A DNA stretch of 64,000 nucleotides from Mantamonas sphyraenae STR306 (Eukaryota > Protista > CRuMs). Positions 20,066 to 38,870 of this stretch are shown here, one piece after another. The stretch's first letter is position 1, and each line of letters opens with the position of its first letter. Location: the NCBI GenBank assembly GCA_026936335.1, contig JAPMXV010000019.1, positions 214,373 through 278,372 of the forward strand, written 5' to 3'. The notes under the pieces are model-generated. The model did no database searches and was not told the origin of the DNA. It saw only the letters and a list, made by a program, of their open reading frames with translations. The translations under genes and the position numbers were made by a program.

Positions 20066-20155
20066 GCACATGTTGGTGGGCCAAGGGGTGTGGGAAAGTG
20101 GGGAGTGGGGATTGGCGCGCGCGAACGAATCCATTGTTTTTTTGAGCTTGAGACG

Positions 20156-23100
20156 ATGACCAGGACAGTGCTTGTGTTGTTGTTTCTTGCCATGCTTGTG
20201 TGCTCCTCTGTGTCGGCATTGTCCGATGGAGGAGAATCCACTACTATACACCAATCGATTGCAGTTGATCCGAGCGTGGATGATGACGTGCTTTTTGCGG
20301 ACATGCCGTATGCGGTGTCGACGCGTGGGCTGAACGGACCTGAGGCGTTTGGCAAGGAAGCTGTGGTGCGGGCCGGGAAGGAGGCATCGGCGGGCGACGA
20401 ATCGCCAAAGCTGATTCTGCGCACATTCACCAAGGGACCCGTTGTGGTCCATGAACGGTATGCGAAAGTGGAGCCCGAGTTCCACTCGCACGTGACAGAG
20501 GTTGTAGCGCCTGTGAACGAACTTCGTGCGACAGGCCTGCTGACCACTGCGGGCAAGCACATGTCGCGTGTGATGGAACATGGTCTGCGCAATCTGGACG
20601 AGAATGGACGCGGTTCCGTGAACCTGGAAGATGAAGCAGCGGCGGAATTGCTTCACGGCGAGCGCTCGGACGAAGAGGTGGCAGAACGAGCACAACAGCT
20701 GGCTACTCACCGATCGCAGGTGGCAGCGCTGCGTGCACATGGTCTTTTGTCAGACAAGGAGGAGCTGCCGGAACATGCAGGTGAGATTGTGGCGTTTGTG
20801 AAACGTGCCAAAGAGGGAAAGAGGGAAAACGTTTCGCGGTCCTTTTTTCGGATGTTCCAGCTCGCATTTTCGACTCACACGGCGAGACGCATGACCTGGG
20901 GACATCACACACCACACAGGCGTGCTGCAGGTGACATGCGCCTTCATGAAGGCGCATGCGCAACTGCAGAAAGGGTCGACCTTTGGCCTGCCGTCAGGCC
21001 TCTACCGGTTCTGGAGGTGTCAGGACCGAACGGCAAGGCATGGGTGCCAAACTCCCAGATCGCTTGCTCGGGCGAGGCTGCGGGCACCTACCGACTGGTG
21101 GTGCACCGTGCCGATATGGAGGAGGTGATCAAGGAAGGTACGGTACGCATGGAACTGATCGGTGTGGATCCTGAAATCGTTCGTGAATACGACGAGGTCA
21201 AGGCGGGCGAGGCCGGACTGGCACCAGGGAGCGAGGAACTGAACAAGTTCCACGGTCTGAAGCAGTACGCGTACGGAGCAGGCGATGAAGAGGAAGATGA
21301 GGAGGGAGGGGAGGAGTTGGAGGACAAGAACGAGGACAAGTTCGTGGACAAAATTGTGGACGCGGTCAAGTCGGCGTGGGACAAGGCCAAGGAGCTGTGG
21401 AACGGCCTTCAGGGCAACGTGGACGCCAACAGGAACTTTGGTTACGAACTGAAACTGGCGATGTACAACACAGAGGTGTTGAACGCCAAGGTGAAGAAGG
21501 TGGACGTGCTGATGATTGCGGAGGAGGCCAAGACTCGCGTGCACCCGCGTTTGGTGCTTGCGTTCAAGCTGCGCAACTTCAATCTGAAGCACGCGGAAGT
21601 GAAGCTGACAGGCTCGCTGGACGTGTTTGCGCGCGTGTGGGTGCAGGTGTCGCGTGGCATCGAGCTGAAGAAGGAGGTGCCGCTGTTTGACAAGCTTGTG
21701 GCCAAGCCTACATTCATGGTGGGCCCCGTGCCTGTGGTTGTGTTTGTGCGCGCCAAGGCAGTTGTGGGCGCGGTGATGGGCATCCGTGCGGGCGTGCAGA
21801 CACGCCTTACGGGATCGCTGGGCATCGCGTTTACCGGAGGCGTTCACTTCAAGAACGACAAGTGGGGCGTGGACTTTCATTTCAAGATCAAGCCCAACCT
21901 GAAGACGCCGGAGAAGGTGCAGCCGTGCGGAAACCTGGACGTCAAGTTCTACGTGCAGGGCAACGTGAAGTTCCTGCTGTACGACCAAGCAGGACCGCAT
22001 CTGACGGTGGAACCGTACCTGAAGATGGTTTTCCAGCCGCAGGGCATGTCGCCGTGTGTGACGCCGGCAGTTTCGGCGCTGCCTGGTCTGCCGAAGCTGG
22101 TGCTGTGGGCAAAGCAGTTTGCGGTGGCGTTTGGTGAGGTGAAGGCAGTGTTGCCGAAGATCAAGACGCCGGAGCTGCGTGCGGAGCTCAAGGCGAGCTT
22201 CAAGGGCCTGACGGACATCGGTGTGGATCTGCTCAAGTCGCTGAAGGGCATGCCGCTGGATAAGTGGATGGGCAAGCTGAAGGGCCTGCGTGGCAAGTTC
22301 CTGGGCAAGTTGAACGGCCTGAAAGGCAAGTTCAAGCTGGAGGGGCCTGACCTGGACGGGTTCAACCTGGTGCTGCGCATTGCAAAACAGACGTTTGTGT
22401 TTGTGGTGCGATTGGGCAACCCGCACCTGAAGGACCTGGACTTTGAGTGGGGCGTCAAGAAGAAGGAGACGGAGGAGGGCGATCCGGAAGACAAGAACCG
22501 GATCACCTTGTACGCAGGCGTGCTGGCAACGACCGGCGTAAGTTTGAAGATTGTGGAGTGGCTGCTGATGGAAAAGAACTGGCTGCTGCACTCGGTGGAG
22601 AAGGAACTGTTCACCGTGAGCTTCAAGCTGCCGCTTTTTCACGGAGAAGGAGAAAAAGACGATCCTGGTGAAGCGCCGCAAGTACGAGTACCAGAAAGAG
22701 GCGGTCAAGACGCAGATGCGAGCACAGGCGAACGTGGACGCGACGAAGCGTCTGGTTGCGGCCAAGAAGAAGCGTGCAAAGCAGATTGCGGCTGCGGTTG
22801 CCAAGCTGCACGCAGCGGGCATGTCGCTGGGTAAGCTGGCAAACAGCCGAGTGAAGGGCCACTACCGTAGCCTGATCCAGGCGATGCTGCTTGTGGGCAA
22901 GAAGTTTGTGACGTACCTGGCGAACAAGCTGAAGTATTTTGCGGTGCAAAACACGGACGCCACGCGCACGTTGACCAAGGTGAACTCGCTGTATGCCAAG
23001 TACGGCCACCACTTTGACAACGTGCAGGGTGTGGAAGACGTGGAGGACGTGGACGAGGAGGTGGAAGATGAGGACAACGGCGCGGGCTCGGCTTCCGCCA

Positions 23101-26100
23101 AGGTGCAAAAGACGCTTGTGCAGATGATGGCTGACCAGAGGCAGATGCTGCCGGCCGTAGATGCAGGGCTCAAGAAGATCCGCAAGAAGATTGCAGGGTA
23201 CAAGAAGGACATTGCCAACAACTCGGCGCACCACCGGAAGTACCGCCAGCACTTTGTTGCGTACCACAAGCGCGGTCTGCGGTCGCTCAAGACGTGGACG
23301 GCTTTCCGCAAGGCTGTGGCCGAGTCTGAGAATCCGGGGGACGCGTTTGTGCGCGTTGCGGAGGAGGTGCAGCTGTGGTTTGCAGACTCGCACAACCCGC
23401 GTCTGACAAACAGCAGCCACTGGAAGAACGTGTATGCCAAGAAGGTGCACGCCCTGAAGCAGATGGCGCGTATCATCAAGATGCTGCGTGTGCCTACGCA
23501 TGCGTTGAGTGCGAGCAGCCTGGAGCGTGCGCTGAACCAGCTGCACACGTATGCAGAACGGCTGCGCACGAGCAAGTGGTCTGCGCCGCATGTGAAGCGT
23601 GGTGCGTACAAGACGTGGCTGCGTTCGGCTGTGTCCAAGGCACACAGCATGGCAGCCAAGGCGAAGAAGCAGAAGCAGTCGATGTACTGGAAGCACATGG
23701 CGCTTGCGGCACGCGCAGAAGTGCAGGCTGTGGTTGCGACGTGGATGTACAGGCTGCATTCGCAGGAAGTGAACCCGCTGCGGCGTATGTCGTTGAGCTC
23801 GTGGTTCATGCACCACGCGCTGGCCAAGTACGCCAAGACCGGCGTGGAGGCGTGGAGCCTGCGGGCGAAGTTTTACGCAGCGTACCGGCTGCGGGACATG
23901 TCTTCGTACCTGGGCAGGTTCGACGGGTGGAAGGCGAACGCAAAGATGGTCAAGATGGTTCGAGACTACATGATGCTGGAGATGTTCCAAGGAGGGCGAT
24001 CGGCAAAGGACCGCTTGGCGTTCTACGAAGCGCTGGAGCTTGAGTTTGTGGCATGGATGCGTGAACAGGAGGTGATGAACCAGCACTCGAGCGTGAGGGC
24101 TCCGGACGCACGCAAGACCAGGCTGGTGCGTGCGCAGCACAAGTGCATTGCGGCGCAGACGGTTGCGCAGCGGTACACGCCGGGCACCAAGGCTCACCGC
24201 GTGGCGGAGGCCAAGTATGGCCAGGCGTGCATGAAGTGGAAGTTTGAGCAGTATTCTCATCGCAGCTCGCTGAAGAGGATGCTTCACCAGGCGACCCACA
24301 TTTTCAACAAGCGCGTGGAGTGGGCGGAGGGCAAGATGAGCCGAAGCGAGTTTTTCCGCCACTACCGCAGCAGCGTGAGCAGCAGGTGCAGCGACCTGAT
24401 CAACCAGTCGTCGTCGTATTGGAAGAAGCAGTGCTCGCAGGCTATGGCCTACATTGCCGAGGAGGAGAAGCTGACGTCCAAGTTGCCTACGCTTGCGCGC
24501 CATGCGGGCCGCTCTGAGCAGGACAAGATGGCGCTGCAGGTGGCCAAGCTGCGCACCAAGGAGCTGTCGTTCCTTGTGGCACAGAAGGCCAACTTTATTT
24601 GGCTTCCAGATCACACACAGGGCGCAGCGTGGTACCACGCCGAGGTGGCTGTTTCCCGCGAGCGCGAGGCGCTGGAGCGCACTGGACGCGCAGTTCACAT
24701 GTACCGCGTGCAGATGTACGAAGCGACGGCGCTGTCCAAGCAGACTGCGGTGATGCGCTCGCTGATCAACTTTTCCGGCCCCACGCCGGGCACGCTGAGC
24801 GCGATCTCATCTCAGGCGTCCAAGGAGGCAGCGGCGCTGAAGAAGCGTGCGGAAAAGGCCCGCGATGAAGTGGGCAAGCTTTCGGCAAGCGCACGCGCTG
24901 CGATGGCCAAGTGGAAGAGCATGGCGGCGAAGGAAGAGGCGAAGCGTGCGGCAGCGGCAAAGAAGGGCAAGTGGGCGAGTGCGTCTGTGCACCAGCAGCT
25001 GCGCAACCATGCACGCTTCATGGCTGAGCTGCAAAACAAGATCAAGAACTCGTATGCCTACAAGATGACGCTGTACCAGGCCAGGAAGGCCAAGGCGACG
25101 GCGACGTTCAGCACGAGCGAGGCCGAGTTTAAGCTGCTGAAAGAAGGCAACATGAAGCGGGCGTACCTTTCCGCAGTGATGTATCATGCGCGCGCAAACA
25201 TGTCGCTGTACTGGACGAAGCTGGAGCTGCTGAAGCCGCTGAACGCAAAGGCGCGAAGTACTACGAAGGCGAGGTGCGCAAGGCGCAGGCGGTGGTGGCA
25301 AAGGGCCTGGACTTCCGCAAGGACGACCAAGTGAAGGACCACCAGAAGAAACTTGCGGTGGCTGCGGGCAAGCTGGAGCACTACGAGGGCATTGCCAAGT
25401 TGTCGAAGCACAACACGGCTTTGGCCAAGCGTTGGCTGTACACCAAGGCGGCAGAGACGGCGTGGGTTGCCTTTTTCAAGGCAACGTGGCGCTCGGACTT
25501 GTCTGCACGTGCGCAGTTCAACGAGTGGAAGGCCAAGGCATGGCACGCGCGAGCAAACGCAGAAACGGGCAGCAAGGCGGAAAAGGCGAAACTGGCAAAG
25601 TTCTACCGCCTGCGCGTGCGCTACATGGAGATGATGGCGTCGAGCTACTACAACTACATGGCGTTCTATGAGAGCAACGGGATGGACAAGGCCAAGCGTG
25701 TTGTGTACCTTGCACAGGGCAAGCAGGCAGCGAAGCTGCGCGACGCCATGCACAACGCCGACCCGTACTATGACTTGGCGTGCGTCAAGAGCAACCGCAA
25801 GGCTGGGAGCAAGAAATACGACGAGTTTCGCGCAATGGAAAAGAAGCACGGGTGCTACCGGGGCAAGGAGACGCACGGATGTTTGTACGCGCAGTCGATC
25901 CGTTTGCAGGCGGACGCGCACTACGCGCGTGCGTCGTACTGCAGGAACAAGCGCCACGTGTGGGAAAAGCATTTCGAGTCGAGCTACCAGGAGCAGTCGC
26001 AGGCGATGCGCTACCGGGCGGACATTGCGCAGCGCCGCAGCAGCGGCAAACTGACGCCGAAGAAGCACACGGAGCTGCGTCTGTTTGTGCACGGGTTCAT

Positions 26101-28269
26101 GCTGATGAGCAAGTGCTACCGCATGTCGGGAGGCACGCATGCGACAAAGGACCCAGCAAAGCGCCGCCAGGCGGCTGCAGACGCGTCGGAAGTGTGCACG
26201 GAGGCGACGGAGGCGATGAACGAGGCGCGTGGCGTGGACCCTGCGCGTTCTGCGCAGTGGCGAGCGGCGGAGAAGAACTACAAGAAGCACATGGGCGAGG
26301 AAGAAGCGCGTCTGCGAAAGGCCAAGGACGGGCAGACCAAGGGCGTGCTGGGCTACCGCGTGAAGTATTGGAAGTTTTTGATCAAGCAGGCGAGCGAGAT
26401 GGTGCGGTTCTACAACAACATGCGCTACACGTTTTACCGCGAGCGTGCGCAGATGTACTATCACCAGGCGCGCTTCTGGGAGTACACGGCGGACCAGATT
26501 GAGAACGGCAACAAGAAGTGGTTGCGGTACAAGGCACTGGAGAACCACTGGCAGGCGGAGGCGTTCAAGTACATGGCCAAGGGAAGCCAGGAGGGCAAGT
26601 CGTATGCGCTCACCGTGGACAAGAGTCAACGCAACGCGGCAAACTACCTGGCCATGGCCAAGAAGCTGCGTGACAAACCGACCCCTGCGGAAGAGTTGAT
26701 GGAAAACCTGCGCGAGAACCTGACAAGGGTACACAAGAAGGTCAAGGTGATCAAGGCTAAGCTGCACAAGGCGATGGCAGCGGCGACAAAGGCGGCAGCG
26801 GTGGCCAAGGCTGCGGCAGACCAGATGCAGGACCGCGGATCGCACGAAGCCAACGACCGTGAAAAGGCCAAGGTGAAGGCGCTGGAGGATGCGAGTGCCA
26901 AGGCGAACGCTCTGGTGCGCAAGATCCACGCCGAGCTGGACGAGGCACATCGCTCGGCCAAGGTGATCTACAAGGCGCTGCACGCGCAACAGCACAAGGT
27001 GCTCGCGGCGTCGCACGAGCGTGGCAAGCAGCACCTGGCAATCGCCAAGAAGGCAGCGGTGCGTCTTGTGCAGCGTGTGCTGGCAAACGGCACGCTCAAG
27101 GTGCTGGAAGCCCTGATGAAGGTGGCGTGGGCGATCCGTCACACGGGCATTGCGCTGCTGAGTTCGCTGCGCTTCCGCTCGTCGCTGAAGGGCGCAGCAC
27201 TCAAGGCCATGCAAAAGAAGGCGTCGGGATATGTGGTGTACGGCAGCAATCTGTTGCACCAGGACTACGAGGTGTCGGCGCAGATCAAGCAGATGGCGGC
27301 CAAGTACGGGATCAAGGCGGACGGGTACATCTCCAAGAACGCGCGACACATCAGCCAGTACCAAAAGGAAACCGAGAAGCTGGTGCAGAACGGCGTGCGC
27401 AACCTGGTGGCACGCGAAAAGGTGCACAAGGCCCGCAAGCTGGAGGCGAAGCGCAAGCGGGAGCTGGCACGCGCCAAGCGCCTCGCAGCCGAGGCCAAGG
27501 CTCGCGCGGCACACGAACGCAAGACGTTTGCGGCCAAGATGAAGGCGGCAGCCAAGGTGCGCGCTGCCGAGCGCAAGGTGAAGGAGGAGAAGGCCAAGGT
27601 GGCGCGCGCAGCAGCCAAGCTGGCCAAGAGGAAGGCACAAGAGGCGTTCCTGAAGAAGCGTGCAGCCGCGTTGGCAGCCAAGGCCAAGGCCAAGGCTCTG
27701 GCGGAGCAGAAGAAGCAGGATGCGCTGAAGAAGGCGGCAATCAAGGCCAAGAGCGCAAGGATGCGCAAGGCGGCCGAGAAGAAGCTCAAGGCGTTGGTAA
27801 AGAAGGAAAAGGCCAAGTATGTGAAGATTGCCAGGCAGGACGAAGAGCGCATCGAAGCAAAGGCCAAGGCCAAGAAGGCGCAAGCCAAGAAGGAGAAGGC
27901 CAAGGCCAAGCAGCAGATGCGCAAGTTGTTGAAGCAGCGAGCCAGGAAGATGTTGAACAAGAAGAAGACGAAGAAGGGAGGAAGGAAGGGTGGAAGGAAG
28001 GGTGGAGGAAGGGTGGCAAGAAGAAGAAGGGCAGGAAGGGACGTGGTCGTGGCAAGCGCGGCAAGCACAGTGGCTGCACGTGCACTTGCTATGGCCGTCG
28101 TGGATGTACATGCAAGTGTGGGGGGCGTCGTGGGCGTCGTGGGCGTCGTGGGCGTCGTGGTGGGCGATGCAGACGCCACACACGGTGCGTCGTGCGTCGA
28201 GGCTACCGCTTCTGCTTCTTGTACTTCTGTGAGCGCAGGGTGCGACTTGTCTCGCGCCGCAGGGTTTGA
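20156..28269 (+). CDS. Giant secreted, highly basic protein (~2,700 aa) of unknown function; frame breaks ~20820, ~20900, ~21008, ~22638, ~25250, ~28006
   Basis: Signal peptide MTRTVLVLLFLAMLVCSSVSA, a beta-rich region with FMVGPVPVVV, ~1,800 aa of K/A/R/Y-rich helical sequence and an R/G/C-rich tail. ORFs 20090-22834, 22668-25334, 25274-28318 and the end of 27127-28269 join via single-base indels at homopolymers. Confidence 0.75.
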
Positions 28270-28556
28270 TTCGCGGAGCGCCAACGCTTGTAGCGGCTGT
28301 TGTCGTCCGGAGAAATGAAGCCAGTTTGATCGAACTCGAGCAGCGTCGTTGCACATCACGGAACAACACACACTCATACGCAGGATATTGACACATTCGC
28401 CACGTGCAACGATTTGTGGCTCTATGTGCGCTCGAAGCACTCGCTTCTGAGCATCTTGTGGCCCGGAGAGTTTGTCGACGGGCGACGATACAGCGAAGAC
28501 AGGAGAATGCTGGATGACCAGGATGTGTAGGGGCAGATGTATGTATGTTCACACTC

Positions 28557-31500
28557 TCACGGTTCTTCCTTTTCTCGTAGGGCCGCGCGTCGGGCAAACG
28601 CGGCGACCTCGGCAAGCGTGCTGGGTTGGATGGAGTCACTGGAACCACTCTCTGATTCCCACGCACGCTTTGTGCTCTTGGAGGGATGCACTGCGTTGAC
28701 TTTGTGCACCATGGTCATGCCCAGGGCGTTGGCGATGCGCCTCGCCGCACTCCCGTCTTTGCGATGCGCCAGGGCCATGGCCAACTCCACAAGCTCGCGC
28801 TTGGGTGCCTCATCCACTTCGTTGGGGTCCATGAGGAAACCCATGACCTGCTCTGCTCCTCCGCTGTCGCACACCTCCCTGATCTTCTGCCACTGATCGG
28901 AGAAGCGTCGCCTGTACGCCGTCTGCTCGTTGAGATTGACGACCTGCTGCAACGCCTTTTCCAGCGCCCTCATCCTTTCCAGATCAAGGCGCTCAAACAC
29001 CATGGCCTGTGCGTCGGGAAGGTGATCTGCTCCGAGAACCTGCCCCAGCAGGTGCATCAGCCGGTCGCCGCGTTCGGCGTATTCGTCGCCTTGGTCCGTC
29101 GCGTTGATGAGCCACCTGCGCTTCCAGGCGACCACTTTTTGGTAGATGTCCAGGCCAACGTAGAGGACACAGACCACAAGCACAGAAACGGCCACGGCGA
29201 TGGTCAAGTTTGTCCACGATTCGTAGCCCCGCGCATTCAAGCCTTTGGTGACAAACATGATGCCTGACACAAGGAGTAGCAGTGATTGCACAAACAGAAT
29301 GCTCTCCAGGTTGTTTTGCATGCTCGTACGGTACGGACGAAATCGGAACTGCATCACGGTGGCTGTGCCCAGCACCAGCAGACCGAGGAGCCCCTGCAGG
29401 ACTGGGAGAGACGCCGCATACAGGTTGATGCTCACCACGGCAGCCTTGCGCAACAGCACAAAGCCTTCGTAGTAGAAAAACCGGCTGCGGAACTTGCTAA
29501 ACAGCGTGCTGAAGCTATGAAGGAACGGCTCCGCACTGCGCGTTTCTGGTTCCCGACCGCGGTACATGATGCCCAGTGCCATGGCAGGGATGCCCAGCAC
29601 GTACAGAAACATAAACACAGAGGCAGCCGGGACCAGGTGCATATGTACGCCGTCGGGCACCCAGCACTCCTCGGCTGGAAGAGACTTCATGACGACGAGG
29701 CCCGGGCGCACCTCGACGCAATCAAACACCTCCAGCACCCGTGAGCACAGGGTGATGTACAGGATGAGCGTGGTGAACACGATTTCGTTGATCACATAGC
29801 GCAGGGTGTCGATGCCCACGGGTTCCGTCGTCATCACCACCTCTGCCACACTGTCACGTGCCATCAGCAGCCACATCGTCGTTTTCGGCGTGTCCACAGA
29901 GACCTGAGACACCACCGAAATCGAACGGCGCATGCTGGGTCCTTCGTCCGACAGCGCCAGAGTCTGCGTTTGCTTCCACCTCAAGTACCGGTCCACCACC
30001 CACCAGTGTAGGAACTGCAGACCCACACGGACGAGAATACCACACAGCACAATCACGGGCAGTGCCATGGTGAACCAGAAGCGCGTCTCGTACGTCCACA
30101 TGGCCTGCAGCGAACATTCGGGCGCAGCCGCATCCAGATTGAAGTTCAGCACCGAGAAGTAACCAAACATGTTGCGCACGCTGTCGGGCCAATTGAGACG
30201 AAAGTCGGCAAACGTGCCCATGACTTGAAGATGGTTCAGTGCCAGCGAGATGACTCGGCCCCTGCGTTTCTGGGCTGTGCGTGCCTCGCGACGCACCCAG
30301 CTCAGGTAGATCACAAACAGGACCAGCAACAGGATCAAAAACGTCTGCGACTCTTCCTGACATGGCTGGCATGCTTCACCCAGCCGGTAGTACCCTTCGG
30401 TGCACTGGCCACACAAACGGCCCTGGTATCCATCGCCGCAGTTCGTTCCGTTCCCACCCAAGCAAGCGCTCTCCACCGCACAGCGCGTAAAGTGGAACTG
30501 AAGGCCGGTCCCGGTGGAAAAGAATCCAGGGAGGGCCTCTGGCAGCGACGAAAGCCCCTTGCACATTGCATTTTCTGGGCACGCAGTGCAAGCGAGCCCA
30601 CGAGCGCCTTGAGGATGGTAGAAACCCGGTGAGCAGCGGCAGTCTGAGAGAAACTCGGGTCCGTCGTCCTTGTATGCTTGAGAGCCCGTGGGGCATTCAA
30701 CAGGCAAGGGGAACACCGTGAACGTCACGTTGGAGCTCTTTGGCCGCGCCCATGTCTGCCCGTCGTCAAACGAGACCTCGGGTGGAAACGTGCCGCGTGT
30801 CTGTGTGGAAGGGGTCTGCACAACGAGTGTACCCTCATCCCCGACATGCACCTGCGTAAACACCTCGTCGCCAAAGCGCACGCGCACAACGGGCGCACCC
30901 TCGACAAACCCACCACCTCGGATGGTCACTGCCAACGCATCGCCAGGCTGCTTGCGAATTGGTTCAAGATTTGCAATGGTCACCGTGTCGTGCAGCGTCA
31001 GGTTGGACGACGTCGGATACAGTTGCTGGCCGTTGTTGGCCACCCAGATCTTGACAACCACGGGCCGTGCAAGCGTGCCTCCGTAGGGAGGGACAGCCAC
31101 ACGCAGCGTAGACGTGCCCACGCGCTCGGCTGCCACACGTACAGACCACCCTGCGCCGTCTCGCAGTTCCACCTGCGGCGTGTCGCGCAGCTGGGCAAAC
31201 ACACCGCGCACAGACACCACCGTGCTACCAGCGCCGTTGGCCACGTGCGGCCACGTGGCATTGACCACCGACGTCGAATACACCTGAAGCGCCATTGGCT
31301 TCTCGGGGGGTAAACGTGCGTCCAGAGTCTGTCGACACGGCCATGGAGAGCTGGTGCACACGCTCCACGTCAGACGACGACACAAGCGTCAAAGGCAACG
31401 CACCAATCTGCACCTCCATCTGCGACCCATCGTCATCCACACGCAATGCTACTGCTTGCTGCACAACCGCGCCTGTTTCGTTGGACCGCAGGCGCAGCAG

Positions 31501-34500
31501 CATCGAGTTGCCCACGCTGCTGTTCAGCAGCTGCGCACCCACAATGGTCAACACCGTGCCGCCCACCACAGGTACGGACTGTGGAGAGACACTGCGCACA
31601 CGCGGACTGGCCGTGCTGTATCGCACGCCGCTGCACGACGTGAAATCGACGCCGTTGGTGGCGATTTCAACCGTGTGCAGACCATCCGGCAACGCAGGCG
31701 TCACACAACGCATCTCTGTGCGTGTCAGCACCCTGCACTCGCGTGTTTCCTGCCCGCCAAAGCGTGCGGTAAGCGTGGGGAGCCCCAACATGTTGGTGCC
31801 ATACAACGCCACCTCCGTCTCCATGTTGGTCGGCCCCAGCGCACGTCCGATCTGCTGCACAGCCACATTCTGAAAGTACAGCAACGAAAGAGGCATGCGC
31901 ACATAGTTCTGGCCATTCAATGCCACCAGCAAGCTTGTGTCCACCGTCTCCAGCGCGCCGATCGGCAACGTGGGCGTCACCACGGTCATGTTGGCCGTGG
32001 TCCCCTCCATGGCTGCCACGGGGTCGCTCAGCCACTGCAATCCTGGGCTTGTGACGTTGAAACGCACACGTGTGGCGTCTCGTGTTTGCGCATACTCGCC
32101 CGTCAGCGTGAGGGTGTTGCCACCCGCCGCACGCGTCGACGTGGGCGCCACCGTGTCCATCACCGGCACACGGTACACCTCAAAGTAAGTGCCACTCTGC
32201 GTGACATTCCCACCCACATTCGTGCTTACGTCCACACTCAGCTTGGCCAGCTGCGAGCGGGGCATGCTTTCGGGCACTTGGTTGCGGAGATCCATCGTCG
32301 ACAGAACCACCGTCGTCTCGCTCTGAGGCATAACATCTGCCGTGGCGTTGCCCACACACACACGTACCCTGCCTGTGATGGGGTGGGCCACAAAGCCTGT
32401 GCCAGTCAGCGTCACCACCGTGCCGCCTTGCTCCGGGCCGCTCAACGGCTGCATGGCCGTCAGCACAGGACGCACTACTGTCAGCGTGTACTGCGTGGTC
32501 ACAAACTGCACGCCATCGTTCAGCGACAGTCGCACCACGTAGCTTCCCTGTGTAATGCTCGGCAGCGGCACGCGGATGCGCGTTGCATCCACACGCTCGC
32601 CTATCAGATCGCCCACAGAGTCCACACGCACCACAATCACACTCGCGTTCACAAACCCTGTGCCGTGAAGAATCAAATCCTGCGGAAGATTCTCCGCCAC
32701 CCGTGCAGGCTCGATGCTCGTGAAAGTTGGCGGCGCAGAAAACGCCATCGCCGCATCCTCGCTCGTCACAAACTGCTGCCCATTCAGCGTCACAAAAACC
32801 TGTTCGCTGCCTGTTTGCAAGCCCACATCCGGAGTGCGGCATGTAATCTCACTGGCACTGGCAATCGTGGCCGACACAGCCGCGAGACTGCTCCCGAAGC
32901 GACACAGCACCTGACCAGGCACAGGCTGCACAAAGCCCACGCCACGCATGGTCACCAGAGTGTTGCCACTCAGTGGTCCCCACGTGGGACGAGCTGTGTC
33001 CAGGCGGAACACGCTCATGCTCACGTTGGCCGGCGTGTACTCTTCGCCGTTCAGCGCCACGCGCAGCGCAAGCGATGTGCCATCGCTTGCATTCAGTGCA
33101 GGCATCGTCACACGCAGCACACTGGTGCTCACAAACGTCGCATTCAGTGTCAAGTTGCGCGGAGCCACGCTCACACGTGCTGCGCCAAGGGTGTCCACAA
33201 ACAGCTGGCCTGCAGCAGGCGCCAGATCCACCGTCAGACCATCCACGTTGTTGGCCATGGCACTCGGAGACACACTGGATACGCCGTGCTCCTGGTACAG
33301 CCGTGCCACCAGAGTGTCCGCCAGAAACTGCTCGCCATTTGGCGCCACACGGATGCTCAGTTGACGCACCGTCCCCGCCGCAAACGCTGTCATGCTGTCA
33401 AACGACGGCAGATCCAGCTCCACCACACTGCTTCCGTTGCTCGGCAGCGCCTTGCGCAGCTCCAGAGTCTGCCCACTGGGTCCAGCGGCCACGAATTGCC
33501 ATCGTGCAAGCTCGGGCAATGTCTGCAGCCCAGTTCCTTGCACACGCACGCGCACAGACTTCCACTTGGGCACAAATGCAGGCGCAAAGCTTGTCACACT
33601 CATGGCATACGTCGTCAGCGTCGCAGGCTGCGCCACAAACACCTGGCCATCCAGAGACACGTACACACGGATGCCCGAGCGAACCACGCCACCAAATGTG
33701 GGCGTCACACATTCCAGCACCGTGCTGTTCACCACGCTGCCTGTTCCCGTCCACGTGGCCCCAGACGACACGTTGTACACACACGTGATCTTGTTGGCGC
33801 CCAGCGGCAGCTCCTGGCCACGCACAGCCAGTCGCGTGCCTCCGCCGCTCGCAGGCCCACTGCGCGCCTCGTTCACAAGCGGCCCCGGCTTGTAAAATGT
33901 AAACGGGATCGCCTGTGTCTCGTTGCTGCCACTGTTGAACAGCACGCGCAGTGTGGTCGCGTACGTGGATGTGTGCGGCGATACAGGCGCCGTGCAGCGG
34001 ATCAGATCCTCCGCCACCACCGTGCATCCCGCGGCCTGTGTCTCATTCGCTCCTTCCCCACGGCTCATCACAACCTGCGAACCCACAATGAAGAAGCGTC
34101 CAATGATATCCAGCGTAGTGCCTCCGCCAATGGGCGCCACGTTGGGTTCCACACGTTGCAGCACAGGATCGCCCGGCTTCAGGAGAAAGGCAAACGGACT
34201 GCCCGGCACAGCCACGCCGTCAACAGTCACATTCATAACAAAGGTGCCAAAGGCCACGATATCCACGCGTGCACGAAACACTGCGGCTGAGGACGCGTTG
34301 CCAAACGTCACCTGTGTGTCCGAGATGGCTGCGCCGCTGAGCCAGCCCTCGACCACAGCCGACGGCACACCGTTGCCAAACCGATCTCGTGCTTGAAGTT
34401 CAAACACGCGCGATACGCCTTCGGGTGGGACCTCCTGGTCCTGGACGGCCGAGGTGTTGCGCAGCAGTGTCTGCGCAGCCACAGCCGGACCCGGCACCAC

Positions 34501-37500
34501 CGTCAGCTCGCCAGTCGACACGGTCGTGTTGCCACCCGTGCGCACCATCAGAGTGTACGATCCACTCACGGTGGCATTGAACGCAAGCACGTATGGGTGA
34601 TTGCTGGTGATCGTCACATTGACACGCACGTCCTCGCGTTGAAGCCATGCCTCCACGGCCAGTGCGTCTGTGACATTGTTGCCATACACATCCTGCACTT
34701 CCAACTCCCACGTGCCATTGGTCCCTGCTTGCACAGTCTGCGCAACTGGCGACACAGCGGCACGCGCAACCACGTTGTGCGTCACCTGCAACGCAAAGGG
34801 CGATCCCGACACATGCGACGCCCCCAGACGCACACCGACTGCGTATGCGCCTGCCAACGTCACGTTGAGCGCTCCCGCATACACACTACCAGACACGGCC
34901 ACAAAGTGCATGGCCAGGTCGCCGCTGAGCAATCCCAGATCCACGCCCGCACTGCGGTTGTTGCCAAACGCATCCTGCACAAGCACAACTGCCGAAGTGG
35001 GTGTACCAGCTGCAATACTGGCAGCAGGGGTCGAAACAAGCCTGGAGACATCCGCATTGGCTGGTGCGGCGGTCACGGCGACCAAAAACGGCGATCCCGG
35101 CACGTGAACACCACCAATACGCACTGGCAGGTCATACGTGCCGACCACTGTGAGGTTGTAACGCACATGCGACAACCCAGACCCCAGTGCGGTCACCGTT
35201 CCGTTGATACCGACAGTCAACACGCCACCCGTTGTCACATTGTTTCCAAACGCGTCTCGCTGCTGCACGGTGTACGCTCCACCAGCACCAGCCACCATAT
35301 CCTGCACACCAGCCACCACTGCGTTGCCCACGGCCTCGATTGCCGGAGCAACAGCCACGGAAAATGGCGATCCAGGCGTGTGGACACCTCCAATCTGTAC
35401 AGGGAGCGCATACACTCCGCTCACCGTCACGTTGTACCTCACACGAGACAGTCCGTCTCCAAGTGCTTCTACCACACCATCCAATCCCACCGTGAGCGCT
35501 TCACCAGTGGTCACGTTGTTTCCAAACGCATCCCTGCGCTGAACTGTAAACGAGCCACCGTCGCCGGCAACCACATCCTGCACGCCCGCAACCACCGCAT
35601 TGCTCACAGAGTCACTATCAGGTGACACTGCGACAGAGAAGGGGGATCCAGGCACATGCACTCCTCCAATCTGTACAGGGAGCGCATACACTCCGCTCAC
35701 GGTCAGGTTGTACCGCACCTGTGACAAGCCTCCACCCAGCGCGGCCACCACACCACCCAAACCCACAGTCAGCACGCCACCCGATGTCACATTGTTTCCA
35801 AACGCGTCTCGCTGCTGCACGGTGTACGCTCCACCAGCACCAGCAACCACATCCTGCACACCCGCCACCACCGCATTGCTCACAGAGTCACTATCAGGTG
35901 ACACTGTGACAGAGAATGGGGATCCAGGCACATGCACTCCTCCAATCTGTACAGGGAGCGCATACACTCCGCTCACGGTCAGGTTGTACCGCACCTGCGA
36001 CAAGCCTCCACCCAGCGCTTCCACCTCACCACCCAGCCCCACAGTCAACACACCACCCGATGTCACGTTGTTCCCAAACGCATCTCTGCGCTGCACGGTA
36101 AACACGCCACCGGCACCAGCAACCACATCCTGCACACCAACCGCCACCGTGTTTCCCACATCCTCCACTGCCGTCGCCACATTCACCGTAAAAGGAGAAC
36201 CAAGCACGTGCACTCCGCCAATCTGTACAGGGAGCGCATACACTCCGCTCACGGTCAGGTTGTACCGCACCTGCGACAGCCCTCCACCCAGCGCTTCCAC
36301 CACTCCACCCAAACCCACAACCAGCATGCCACCCGTTGTCACATTGTTCCCAAATGCATCTCTGCGCTGCACGGTAAACACGCCACCGGCACCAGCAACC
36401 ACATCCTGCACACCAACCACCATCGCGTTGTTCACATCCTCCACTGCCGATGCCACATTCACCGTAAAAGGAGATCCAAGCACGTGCACTCCGCCAATCT
36501 GTACAGGGAGCGCATACACTCCGCTCACGGTCAGGTTGTACCGCACCTGCGACAAGCCTCCACCCAGCGCTTCCACCACACCACCCAGCCCCACAGTCAA
36601 CACACCACCCGATGTCACATTGTTCCCATACGTATCTCTCTGTTGCACTGTAAACACGCCACCGTCGCCAGCAACCACATCCTGCACACCCGCCACCACC
36701 GCATTGTTCACATCCTCCGGAGCCGTCGCCACAGAAACGCCAAAGGGCGACCCAGGAACACCCGTACCCCCAATATCTACACTCAAAGTGTACGTACCAC
36801 TCACGGTGGCGTTGTAGCTGACATCAAACAACCCGGGCCATGCGCCAGCCACGATGCCGAGGGGCACGCCCGCCCCGACGCCGGCCCCCTGCATGCTCAT
36901 GCTCAATCCCACACTTGAATCCGTGAGATTGTTGCCATACGCATCCATCGTGCGCAGATGAAACACAGCACCCGCACCTGCCACGGCAGAGCTCAATCCG
37001 CCACCGCTCGAGATCGTGCGTGCTGCTTTCACCACGCCAGGCAGCAAACTGAGAGACTGTGCACCCCCAACATCATTCCCATCCACGCGCACCTGCAAAG
37101 AATACCCACCGGCACGTGTGGCATTAAACTGGCCTTGCTCCAGCCCTTGCGCAGCGTCCAACACGACAAATGCCACAGGCACTGCCTCTCCACTGCCGCC
37201 GTGTACCAGCGACGCTGTAAACACCGCGTCTGCGTGAGTCAAGTTTGCGCCATTGCCATTGCGAGCCTGAACGGTGAATGTCCGCAGCACTCCGTCTGCG
37301 CGACCAATCGACCCCGAAGCCCCCACAACGGCACACGCAGACGGCGTGGCCACGTTGACGTCGACCTCACACCCCGTGCCCGTTGTCTTGTTGCCTGCAT
37401 CACATGCTGTGCATGTCGACGCCCCTGCGGCTGATGAAAACGTGTTTCCTGGACACGAGAAGCATTGGTCTGCGCTTGTTGCCTCGCTGACATTGCCAAA

Positions 37501-38870
37501 CTTGCCGGCTGCACACAGTGTGCATGCTGTCACTGCGCCACTGGAACTCCATGAGCCAGCTGCACACGGTTCACACAGATACCCACTGCTTCCTGCGCGA
37601 CACTGGGCCTTGACCACGCTCACGTACGCGTTCTTGGTACCATTGTTTGTCTGCCCGGCAAATGCTCCATCCGTCTTGCCACCCACAGCCACACGCGTGT
37701 CGCTGGAACAGCTCATGTCCAGCACCGTTTCTGCAGACGCCGTTCCCCATTGGCGCACATTCACAGTGCTGCCTTGTGTGCTGAGCTCGGCCAAAAAGAC
37801 ATCGGCTCCCCCGTTGTTTGCAAACGGCGCAAACGATCCAGTCGTCGTGCCTGCCACCAGCAATCCATCTGCCACAGTGCACACTGTGTATGCCACGTCT
37901 GTGGAAGACGAGCCCACCAGACGGGTCCAGCTCTTGACGCCGGCGGTGCTGTACACAGCCACAAACGCTGTGGTGCCGCCTGGGTTTGTCTCTCCGTCCA
38001 TGTCACCGTTTGTGGCACCCACCACAAACACTTGGGTGCCATTCACGTGCACTCCATACGCCATGTTGCTGGTACCAGCGCCCCATGTTCGTGTCCACGC
38101 CTGCGTGCCCGTGGAGCTGTACTTCATCAGCGCCGCCTCGGTGTCCCCGGACAGCAATGCTGTCGTGTATCCAGCCACATACACGTTGTTGTCCGAGTCT
38201 ACTGCCACGCCCATGCCGTGGTCTGCCCACAGACCACCCCATTGCCTGAACCAGGTTCGGGCTCCCGTTCCACCGTTGATGCGTGCCACAAACATGTCCG
38301 TGCTCCCAGAGTTGCTCTGGCTGTCCACAACGGTTGATGACGAACCGCACACATACAAATCCCCGTTGGGGAGGACCGCCAGACCTCTGGGTGTGATCCC
38401 ACTGCCTGTGTGCCACGAGCCACGCCACGAGTTTGCAAACGCTTCGGACACCTTCCCGACCTCTGCGTTGGATCCACTCTTTCCACTTGTTGCGAATCGG
38501 GAGTCGGAACCACTCCACGCCATCCTTTCGTGTCGATAATCTGCCGTGTGGCTTCTGGCTACGCTTCCATTTGCAGCCACCTCCAGGAACATGCTGCTTG
38601 CTGACGAAATCTGCACCGCCGCGTGCAATACCCCATCTCCAGAGAATGCTACCGCGTCTGCCTGTGTACCTGTGTACTGCCGAGTCCATTCGACGTGTGC
38701 TGCAGTGTTTGCCACCGCGCATGTCATTGCGAGCACCACAACAGCCTGGCAAACACGGTGTCAGCACACGCCCCTTTTTTCGCAACACGCACGCAGGAAC
38801 CTTCTCGACCCGCGACGTTCTTGTCAGCGCAATCGGCCTCGTTTACCCTTACCATGAGCCTATGCCTCAT
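28557..38870 (-). CDS. Giant receptor/adhesin-like membrane protein (~3,400 aa): beta-propeller, Cys-rich repeats, filamin-type Ig repeats, IPT/TIG repeats, multi-TM C-terminal domain; exon 1 38853-38870, intron 38746-38852, frame break ~31307
   Basis: Spliced signal peptide MRHRLM|AVVVLAMTCAVA. SBBP-like blades (GVAVDSDNNVYVAGYT), CxxCxAG motifs, filamin-like GVHVPGSPFxV repeats and IPT-like PxSGPxxGGTxVTxxGxGF repeats follow. The TM domain has LQVMGTF...NWP, YYEGFVLLRK and RPY. Removing one base from a 6-nt run joins the two ORFs. Confidence 0.85.
35090..36730 (-). repeat. Tandem array of ~6 near-identical 276-bp (92-aa) filamin-like repeats inside the giant receptor gene
   Basis: ctgtacagggagcgcatacactccgctcac recurs at ~35395, 35671, 35947, 36223 and 36499, a period of 276. 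Confidence 0.93.

Follow-up and report, generated by a model that had tools for sequence, protein, structure and literature searches.

What is the true C terminus of a giant secreted protein encoded in the genome of the small marine flagellate Mantamonas sphyraenae? The gene lies on the plus strand of a 64,000-nucleotide (nt) stretch of contig JAPMXV010000019.1 (positions 214,373–278,372; hereafter the window, with all positions counted from its first letter). It starts near 20153, is about 8.1 kb long and passes through three successive frames in the assembly. At its 3′ end, the annotated frame and a second frame, which encodes a cysteine- and arginine-rich tail, give the protein two different endings. 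The reading that we favour, with a probability of roughly 60%, is that the Cys/Arg tail is the real C terminus, hidden by an assembly indel, and that it is a family-specific, disulfide-stapled cap that stays on the giant polycationic protein. This reading draws on two proven assembly errors in the same gene, on paralogues that end in related cysteine modules and on codon usage immediately after the suspected frame change.

One gene split by two assembly errors

The M. sphyraenae genome is diploid, with mostly mono-exonic genes, and was assembled from PacBio reads with FALCON and polished with Racon and Pilon (25.06 Mb, 78 primary contigs, 59.19% GC; PMC10492846). In the window, GC content is approximately 60% and long open reading frames (ORFs) overlap on both strands in many places. 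Short-read contigs from Logan (four runs of one study) were placed on 22560–28550; three runs, X1, X2 and X3, were well covered. The parts of the gene up to the third frame break are as follows.

20090–22834, 22668–25334 and 25274–28318, plus strand: the three ORFs of the giant gene
20153–22632, plus strand: first gene piece, with a signal peptide (MTRTVLVLLFLAMLVCSSVSALS...), an acidic region and a beta-rich module (from translation; no Pfam family)
22633–22634, plus strand: assembly indel 1, a T too many in a run of Ts; one base is omitted in X1, X2 and X3 contigs
22635–25255, plus strand: second gene piece, helical, basic and aromatic-rich, with an isoelectric point of 10.3
25255–25256, plus strand: assembly indel 2, a missing C; a C is inserted behind 25255/25256 in X1, X2 and X3 contigs
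25257–27976, plus strand: third gene piece, a helical region and then a K/A/E-rich stretch, 42% identical to a paralogue on contig C55
27977–28011, plus strand: GGRK-coding 12-nt repeat with a short last unit; suspected 1-nt deletion and frame-change point

The frame breaks at 22633/22634 and 25255/25256 are assembly errors, proven by identical corrections in three runs. Each correction joins neighbouring ORFs; one gene had been split into three. Correction of the first indel gives ...LPLFTEKEKKTILVKRRKYEYQK, which agrees residue for residue with LPFFTEEEKKRILVKRRKYEYQK in the paralogue, and correction of the second gives ...LNAKARKYYEGEVRKAQ.... The corrected protein comprises approximately 2,690 residues and, on translation, begins with a signal peptide. 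Residues 9–353 of the first piece are 38% identical to the paralogue, whose start is also a signal-like hydrophobic stretch.

The body of the giant protein is polycationic and rich in Lys, Tyr and Trp. Ten of the 25 cysteines of the whole protein fall in its last 65 residues, and the 85-residue tail contains 27 Arg and 10 Cys. The predominant basic residue switches at this point from Lys to Arg (27 Arg and 8 Lys in the tail versus 76 Arg and 144 Lys in the preceding 910 residues).

A short repeat unit and the frame that follows it

The third break lies in the GGRK-coding repeat. Its units are GGAGGAAGGAAG (27977–27988), GGTGGAAGGAAG (27989–28000) and the 11-nt GGTGGAGGAAG (28001–28011), and Tandem Repeats Finder reports a period of 12, 3.8 copies, 93% matches and 3% indels for 27973–28016. 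The initial annotation, made from the sequence alone, had noticed that one unit of this 12-nt repeat is short, and the assembly letters at 28001–28011 bear it out. It had also quoted the peptide obtained by restoring the frame: the frame of the ORF at 27127–28269 translates exactly to that tail, with a TGA at 28267–28269, and the main ORF does leave in another frame, ending ...SGCCRPEK at 28318. Read in the tail frame, the region consists of the following parts.

28012–28074, plus strand: basic linker GGKKKKGRKGRGRGKRGKHSG (from translation and codon score)
28075–28119, plus strand: module 1, the 15-residue CTCTCYGRRGCTCKC, C-x-C-x9-C-x-C with extra cysteines at positions 5 and 11 (from translation, alignment and structure prediction)
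28120–28164, plus strand: Gly/Arg spacer GGRRGRRGRRGRRGG, containing a 9-nt repeat at 28123–28160 (from contigs)
28165–28230, plus strand: module 2, 22 residues with four cysteines spaced C-x6-C-x8-C-x4-C (from translation and alignment)
28231–28269, plus strand: Arg-rich end ERRVRLVSRRRV with the TGA stop codon at 28267–28269 (from translation)
28270–28318, plus strand: rest of the annotated-frame ORF (...SGCCRPEK and stop; from translation), which would be 3′ untranslated region under the preferred reading

Under that reading, the primary contig would lack one base in the last GGRK unit, through a polishing error or as the version of one haplotype, and the lost base would push the annotated ORF into the wrong frame for its last 100 codons. 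Programmed frameshifting at the third break was considered and set aside, because the other two breaks of the gene are plain assembly errors.

Two paralogues with twin cysteine modules

A search of the source assembly (78 contigs, 25,061,354 bases, approximately 59–60% GC) identified two relatives of the gene, on contigs C55 and C10. The C55 copy has an open frame of 2,527 codons and is 42% identical to the giant protein across the 860 residues that precede the repeats. Its in-frame end consists of KKAAA and AKK repeats, the 15-residue units CVCRQQRNGSFTCRC and CVCRQQRRGNFACTC, and then RV and a stop codon (...CTCRV). The C10 copy (283 codons) comprises only the 3′ part of a family gene—a K/A/E stretch, AAKKAHAKRL repeats and twin Cys modules. 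After the basic repeat AAKKAHAKRL come the units CTCRQQRHGTFTCSC and CVCRQKRGGNFLCTC, then RA and a stop codon (...CTCRA). The four paralogue units show 3–8 synonymous versus 3–6 replacement codon differences out of 15, and so are translated in that frame and constrained.

The initial annotation had named homologues without the Cys pattern as evidence that would speak against the tail; both paralogues carry a related pattern, C-x-C-x9-C-x-C. In a MAFFT alignment of the three tails, 12 columns are invariant, including G-C-x-C, T-C-x-C and C-V-x-R, and a Gly stands just before the first C-x-C in all three copies. Unit 1 of the window copy fits the 15-residue C-x-C-x9-C-x-C exactly; unit 2 keeps C-V-x-R...R-G...F...C but not the strict spacing, and the module 2 core CVVRRGYRFC aligns with CVCRQQRRGNFAC in the paralogues. 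We define the twin-hairpin module here by its place, at the extreme C terminus of a paralogous protein and immediately behind a polycationic low-complexity repeat, and by two 15-residue C-x-C-x9-C-x-C units; the window copy agrees in place and in its first unit. A hidden Markov model (HMM) built from the two paralogue tails only, applied without composition correction, scores 27.0 bits in the tail frame, 0.3 bits in the annotated frame and −1.8 bits in the third frame.

Three further features of the paralogues were observed. The C10 copy (locus L009, 958–1809, minus strand) has neither signal peptide nor body; its neighbour is a HECT-like ORF, and it represents either a partial duplication or a small gene in its own right. 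In the C55 copy, about 27 codons (locus L010, 8640–8722) read RRQRKPRRQRKP..., that is, the surrounding AKK repeat out of frame; on either side of this segment lies a 1-nt slip in an A run, and the two slips compensate each other. They are probably further assembly indels, and the downstream tail frame is unaffected. Finally, conservation is lost in a stretch behind the acidic N-terminal part of both full-length copies (window approximately 20815–21010; C55 copy approximately 1150–1400 in L010). The paralogue has an in-frame stop codon there, and the stretch may be an intron or a mis-framed piece.

Evidence on the translated frame

An open alternative frame means little at this locus, because the frame that encodes the tail is open for 380 codons, across real coding sequence, and the antisense strand has a 1,160-codon ORF. 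The frames were compared with a score that uses synonymous codon choice only and for which the upstream coding sequence gives approximately 0.5 bits per codon. At 27400–27990, the frame of the third gene piece scores +92 bits over 192 codons. Just past the break, at 28013–28074, the tail frame scores +10.6 bits over 20 codons, versus −2.3 bits for the annotated frame. A whole-codon log-odds score, which favoured the annotated frame over 28060–28180, was dropped: it mostly reflects amino-acid composition, with Val, Ala and Gly common, and Cys and CGT-encoded Arg rare, in the training genes.

Haplotype variation provides a second view of the frame. Length variants within 28006–28352 are all multiples of three (3 nt and 9 nt), whereas the four indels from 28353 onwards are of 1, 2, 1 and 1 nt; the tail region thus behaves as coding. 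An X3 contig carries an in-frame GGC insertion behind 28023. The single-nucleotide polymorphism (SNP) 28238 G>A replaces Arg by Lys in the tail frame and Gly by Arg in the annotated frame. When module 1 is read in the tail frame, three of the codon changes between its halves are synonymous and one is a replacement.

The pattern C.C.{9}C.C, as defined from the paralogues, occurs eight times in the approximately 128,000 six-frame codons of the window, so that about 0.005 occurrences are expected in the 85-codon tail. At the level of sequence comparison, what goes beyond chance is the match of the tail to the paralogue tails, not the openness of its frame. We consider it likely that the tail is translated from at least one haplotype, and the Cys/Arg tail is very probably the true C terminus of the giant protein.

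A hypervariable patch with approximately 13 haplotype differences in 70 nt, including four indels that are not multiples of three, lies at 28332–28401, between two convergent genes. From 28329 onwards, an X3 contig no longer follows the reference but carries a diverged version of this stretch. A further in-frame length variant, of 3 nt, lies at 24407/24420.

Contig geometry at the third break

Breaks between short-read contigs lie at 27993 and 28006. In X1 and X2, the long contig reaches 45 nt past 27948, and the next one begins precisely at 28006. Overlapping 28006–28035 is a 61-nt contig whose depth in these two runs is about half that of its flanks (24 versus 39; 27.5 versus 53). Downstream, the 9-nt repeat GGGCGTCGT (28123–28160; perfect, 4.2 copies) is heterozygous, with three versus four copies, as called from 31-nt and 40-nt contigs that are each at about half depth in X1 and X2. 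The GGRK site looks like an unpopped heterozygous bubble, because its contig geometry is the same as that at this GRR-coding repeat. Allele inference by simulation was also attempted; 46 allele pairs fit when an invented GGTGGGAGGAAG unit was admitted, and this under-determined result is not used as evidence.

Predicted fold and database searches

Structures of the window and C55 tails were predicted with AlphaFold2 (AF2) from the three-sequence alignment. In both tails, the models place four strands on the Cys pairs, which would form two hairpins in each. In the window tail, the predicted strands of module 1 span tail residues 7–11 and 17–21, with a predicted local distance difference test (pLDDT) score of about 66 there, and those of module 2 span residues 43–48 and 54–59. 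The proposal of disulfide-laddered cationic hairpins in the initial annotation thus survives in part: the Cys pairs lie on predicted beta-hairpin strands, albeit in low-confidence models, and the three-rung ladder is not the family consensus, which is C-x-C-x9-C-x-C.

Pfam contains no family that matches the tail or any piece of the giant protein, and no PDB chain sequence matches the tail. Foldseek found nothing significant for the tail, its best rows being EGF-like domains. No Rfam family was found in the tail region, which leaves an explanation by RNA or DNA structure without support. Outside this genome, a word search with the C-terminal region returned only KKAAA low-complexity matches (PF07382-type proteins), a word search with the helical region returned no matches, and a profile search of 1.84 billion representatives returned 0 matches; a search of the ESM Atlas with the beta-rich module gave nothing at 0.9 or above. 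In the searches made, no relative of the giant protein was detected outside this genome.

The preferred reading and its alternatives

According to the preferred reading, two short cationic units built on C-x-C-x9-C-x-C would follow a fast-evolving polycationic low-complexity stretch. Each unit would fold as a beta-hairpin closed by two disulfides (three in the case of window module 1). Both units would remain on the protein as a rigid, disulfide-competent cap, which could cross-link or oligomerise the giant protein or dock it to a partner; they would not be cargo that is cut out as free peptides.

Several observations weigh against this reading. Positions 27949–28005 are repeat-masked in the contig layout, and the extra A that would restore the repeat is shown by no read or contig; in de Bruijn simulations (k = 31), no simple allele pair reproduces the observed geometry (overhang of 45 nt, contig of 61 nt, start at 28006). 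Much of the 27-bit HMM score is composition: composition-preserving shuffles have a median of 16.8 bits, and 14 of 500 reach 27 bits. With the default composition correction of HMMER, hmmsearch with the paralogue HMM misses the window tail, so the similarity between the window tail and its paralogues is one of composition, Cys spacing and position, not a strong alignment. Over 28075–28269, the synonymous-codon scores do not separate the frames (annotated, 3.6; tail, 4.2; third, 7.7). The SNP 28288 T>C is synonymous in the annotated frame, and 28270–28330, which lies beyond the tail-frame stop, is less variable than the patch after 28332. Confidence in the AF2 models is low (pLDDT 53 in the window tail, 65 in the C55 tail). 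Lastly, the structural or cross-linking role of the cap is one that we only infer.

The alternative that survives best, although unlikely, is a true heterozygous frameshift, in which a truncated or aberrant end would come from the haplotype with the 11-nt unit, and the Cys tail from the haplotype with an intact repeat. The contig ends of X1 and X2 near 27993, the start at 28006 and the half-depth 61-nt contig are the signature of an unpopped bubble, as at the GRR repeat 130 nt downstream, and the genome is diploid (PMC10492846). However, the letters of the bubble arms are masked, the simulations are under-determined, and a difference in the copy number of whole 12-nt units would break the contigs similarly.

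There is a slim chance that the assembly is right on both haplotypes, that the protein ends ...VVGVVGVVG...SGCCRPEK and that the Cys/Arg peptide is merely an open alternative frame. The length of the open alternative frame makes openness uninformative, the undecided codon scores over 28075–28269 are compatible with this ending, and so are the synonymous SNP at 28288 and the onset of strong divergence only after 28332; moreover, the annotated frame reads like a hydrophobic Gly/Val segment. By contrast, no such hydrophobic end occurs in either paralogue, comparison with the paralogue tails gives 0.3 bits for the annotated frame and 27 for the tail frame, codon usage just past the break speaks for the tail frame, and two other 1-nt errors are proven in the same gene.

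It is improbable that the tail is translated and its cysteines bind metal, in the manner of a zinc knuckle or metallothionein, or that it is a protamine-like polyanion binder. C-x-C pairs and Arg/Cys-rich composition do occur in metallothioneins and protamines, and the tail comes after histone-H1-like KKAAA or GGRK repeats, where the only database matches are low-complexity ones of the PF07382 type. However, each full-length copy begins with a signal peptide, which should expose the tail to the oxidising environment of the secretory pathway; in the AF2 models the C-x-C strands pair into hairpins, and Pfam gives no zinc-binding family match.

Highly improbable is the proposal that the modules are cut out at dibasic sites as free membrane-lytic beta-hairpins directed at bacteria or prey, convergent with protegrin, tachyplesin and theta-defensin: the signal peptide, the hydrophobic-cationic character of window module 2 (+8, FCFLYFC) and the bacterial diet of M. 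sphyraenae speak for it, whereas bounded cleavage sites are absent, neither Pfam nor PDB sequences give a match to a defensin, cathelin or other antimicrobial-peptide family, and we know of no precedent for a 2,600-residue carrier of two peptides. Release by dibasic cleavage, which the initial annotation had suggested, is not indicated: basic pairs occur at 5 per 100 residues in the last 910 residues and at 18 per 100 in the tail, and also inside the hairpin turn of module 1 (YGRRG), so that they mark no boundaries. The modules do have the sequence traits of beta-hairpin antimicrobial peptides, but the conserved paralogue modules are polar and Q-rich, and Q is rare in that class (PMC13001179).

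Neighbouring genes and other observations

Antisense to the giant gene, a 1,160-codon ORF spans 25184–28666 on the minus strand; it is no gene but a by-product of purine-rich, GC3-rich codon usage. A giant convergent neighbour gene occupies 28557–38870 on the minus strand; its 3′ end matches TIG, DUF7630 and, weakly, TRP channels, and its stop codon lies only about 290 nt from the tail-frame stop. The best database match of a GRP94-type HSP90 of this genome has 76% identity (a EukProt transcriptome) and the others are near 50%, which fits an isolated lineage.

Comparison with known systems

Theta-defensins, which are made by joining two 9-residue pieces, have the spacing CxCxC-x4-CxCxC; that of protegrin is CxC-x4-CxC and that of tachyplesin C-x3-C-x4-C-x3-C. 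Kinship of the tail to these three peptides, to whose motifs the initial annotation had likened it, fails on every testable feature of membership: spacing, prodomain, taxon, and Pfam or PDB matches. A theta-defensin is an 18-residue, backbone-cyclised peptide with three disulfides (PMC13001179). Module 1 of the window has x5 between the cysteine triplets, and the four paralogue modules lack the middle rung of such a ladder; module 1 is, moreover, one contiguous 15-mer inside a long chain. Theta-defensins are primate peptides with precursors related to alpha-defensin prepropeptides, whereas no Pfam family is found on the tail or on any piece of the giant protein.

Protegrins are Arg-rich peptides of 16–18 residues with two disulfides and C-terminal amidation, and tachyplesin and polyphemusin are amidated peptides of 17–18 residues with two disulfides, derived from an arthropod haemocyte precursor (PMC13001179). 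A cathelin-like prodomain, expected for a protegrin, gives no Pfam match in the 2,600 upstream residues; window module 2 has C-x6-C-x8-C-x4-C over 22 residues with 12 more residues after it, and there is no Gly amidation donor at a cleavage site. The tachyplesin/polyphemusin spacing is found in no module, and no PDB chain matches in sequence.

The beta-hairpin antimicrobial peptides, among them also gomesin and arenicin, form a class by function and not by homology. This class as a whole is defined by a length of 11–25 residues, cationic charge, at least two Cys pairs that are at least three residues apart and more Arg than Lys (PMC13001179). The modules resemble this class in length (15 residues), charge (+2 to +3), cysteines (4–6) and Arg-to-Lys balance (2–3 to 0–1), window module 2 has a charge of +8 when counted as a 26-residue stretch, and the Cys pairs are predicted to lie on two antiparallel strands around a Gly/Arg/Asn turn. 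They differ in being the last 64 residues of a protein of approximately 2,690 residues, not a small prepropeptide, and the giant protein has neither a cathelin or defensin prodomain nor a cyclisation or amidation signal. Unlike amphipathic lytic hairpins, the conserved paralogue modules are polar (Q, N, S and T), with a grand average of hydropathy of −0.04 to −0.65. What is shared with the known peptides is only the general format of a disulfide-stapled cationic beta-hairpin, a likeness that is reasonable as an analogy; the defensin and protegrin labels should not be carried forward. There is a very faint chance that this deep-branching, bacterivorous CRuMs flagellate uses giant secreted carriers of an orphan family whose twin Arg/Cys hairpins are released or exposed as membrane-active peptides, independently of the animal systems. 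If the modules were released and active, they would be host-defence-like beta-hairpin peptides of a protist, evolved independently of the animal ones.

EGF-like domains (PF00008) resemble the tail in a C-x-C motif, in the Gly and aromatic residue that precede the next Cys and in a pair of small disulfide hairpins, which are predicted in the tail, and the weak top rows of the Foldseek search are EGF-like domains of MIC6, MSP1-19, Notch and Delta. However, the Foldseek E values are 2.4 or worse, and the Pfam match of the C55 tail has E = 1.2 and 9.9 bits versus a cut-off of 21.5, with no match for the window tail. The EGF pattern has one residue between the second and third Cys, and the window copy does not fit it at all. 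Protamines also show extreme Arg content with interspersed Cys, which in the giant protein follows H1-like K/A repeats; the giant protein differs in having a signal peptide and in not being nuclear. It differs further in a regular C-x-C-x9-C-x-C spacing under purifying selection across its family, and this conserved regularity suggests a fold rather than mere composition.

Single-nucleotide indels in the reference assembly truncate or mis-end real genes, with two proven and one probable in this one gene of approximately 8.1 kb, and errors at such sites will carry over into any gene models and proteomes derived from it. At the end of the gene stands a newly defined, small twin Cys module, C-x-C-x9-C-x-C, which is conserved at the C terminus of an orphan family whose members are giant, polycationic and secreted. 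The lineage with this family lies near the base of Amorphea, and its secreted proteins have hardly been studied. Among systems with C-terminal Cys-rich ends that serve multimerisation are the CTCK domains of mucins and von Willebrand factor, Balbiani-ring silk, and the cement proteins of mussels and barnacles. The tail has no sequence or fold match to CTCK or another such domain in Pfam or Foldseek, and its module is far smaller. Its likeness lies in the overall design: as in the multimerisation ends of giant secreted polymers, a giant secreted protein has its cysteines concentrated at the extreme C terminus, and as in underwater adhesives, the protein body is polycationic and rich in Lys, Tyr and Trp.

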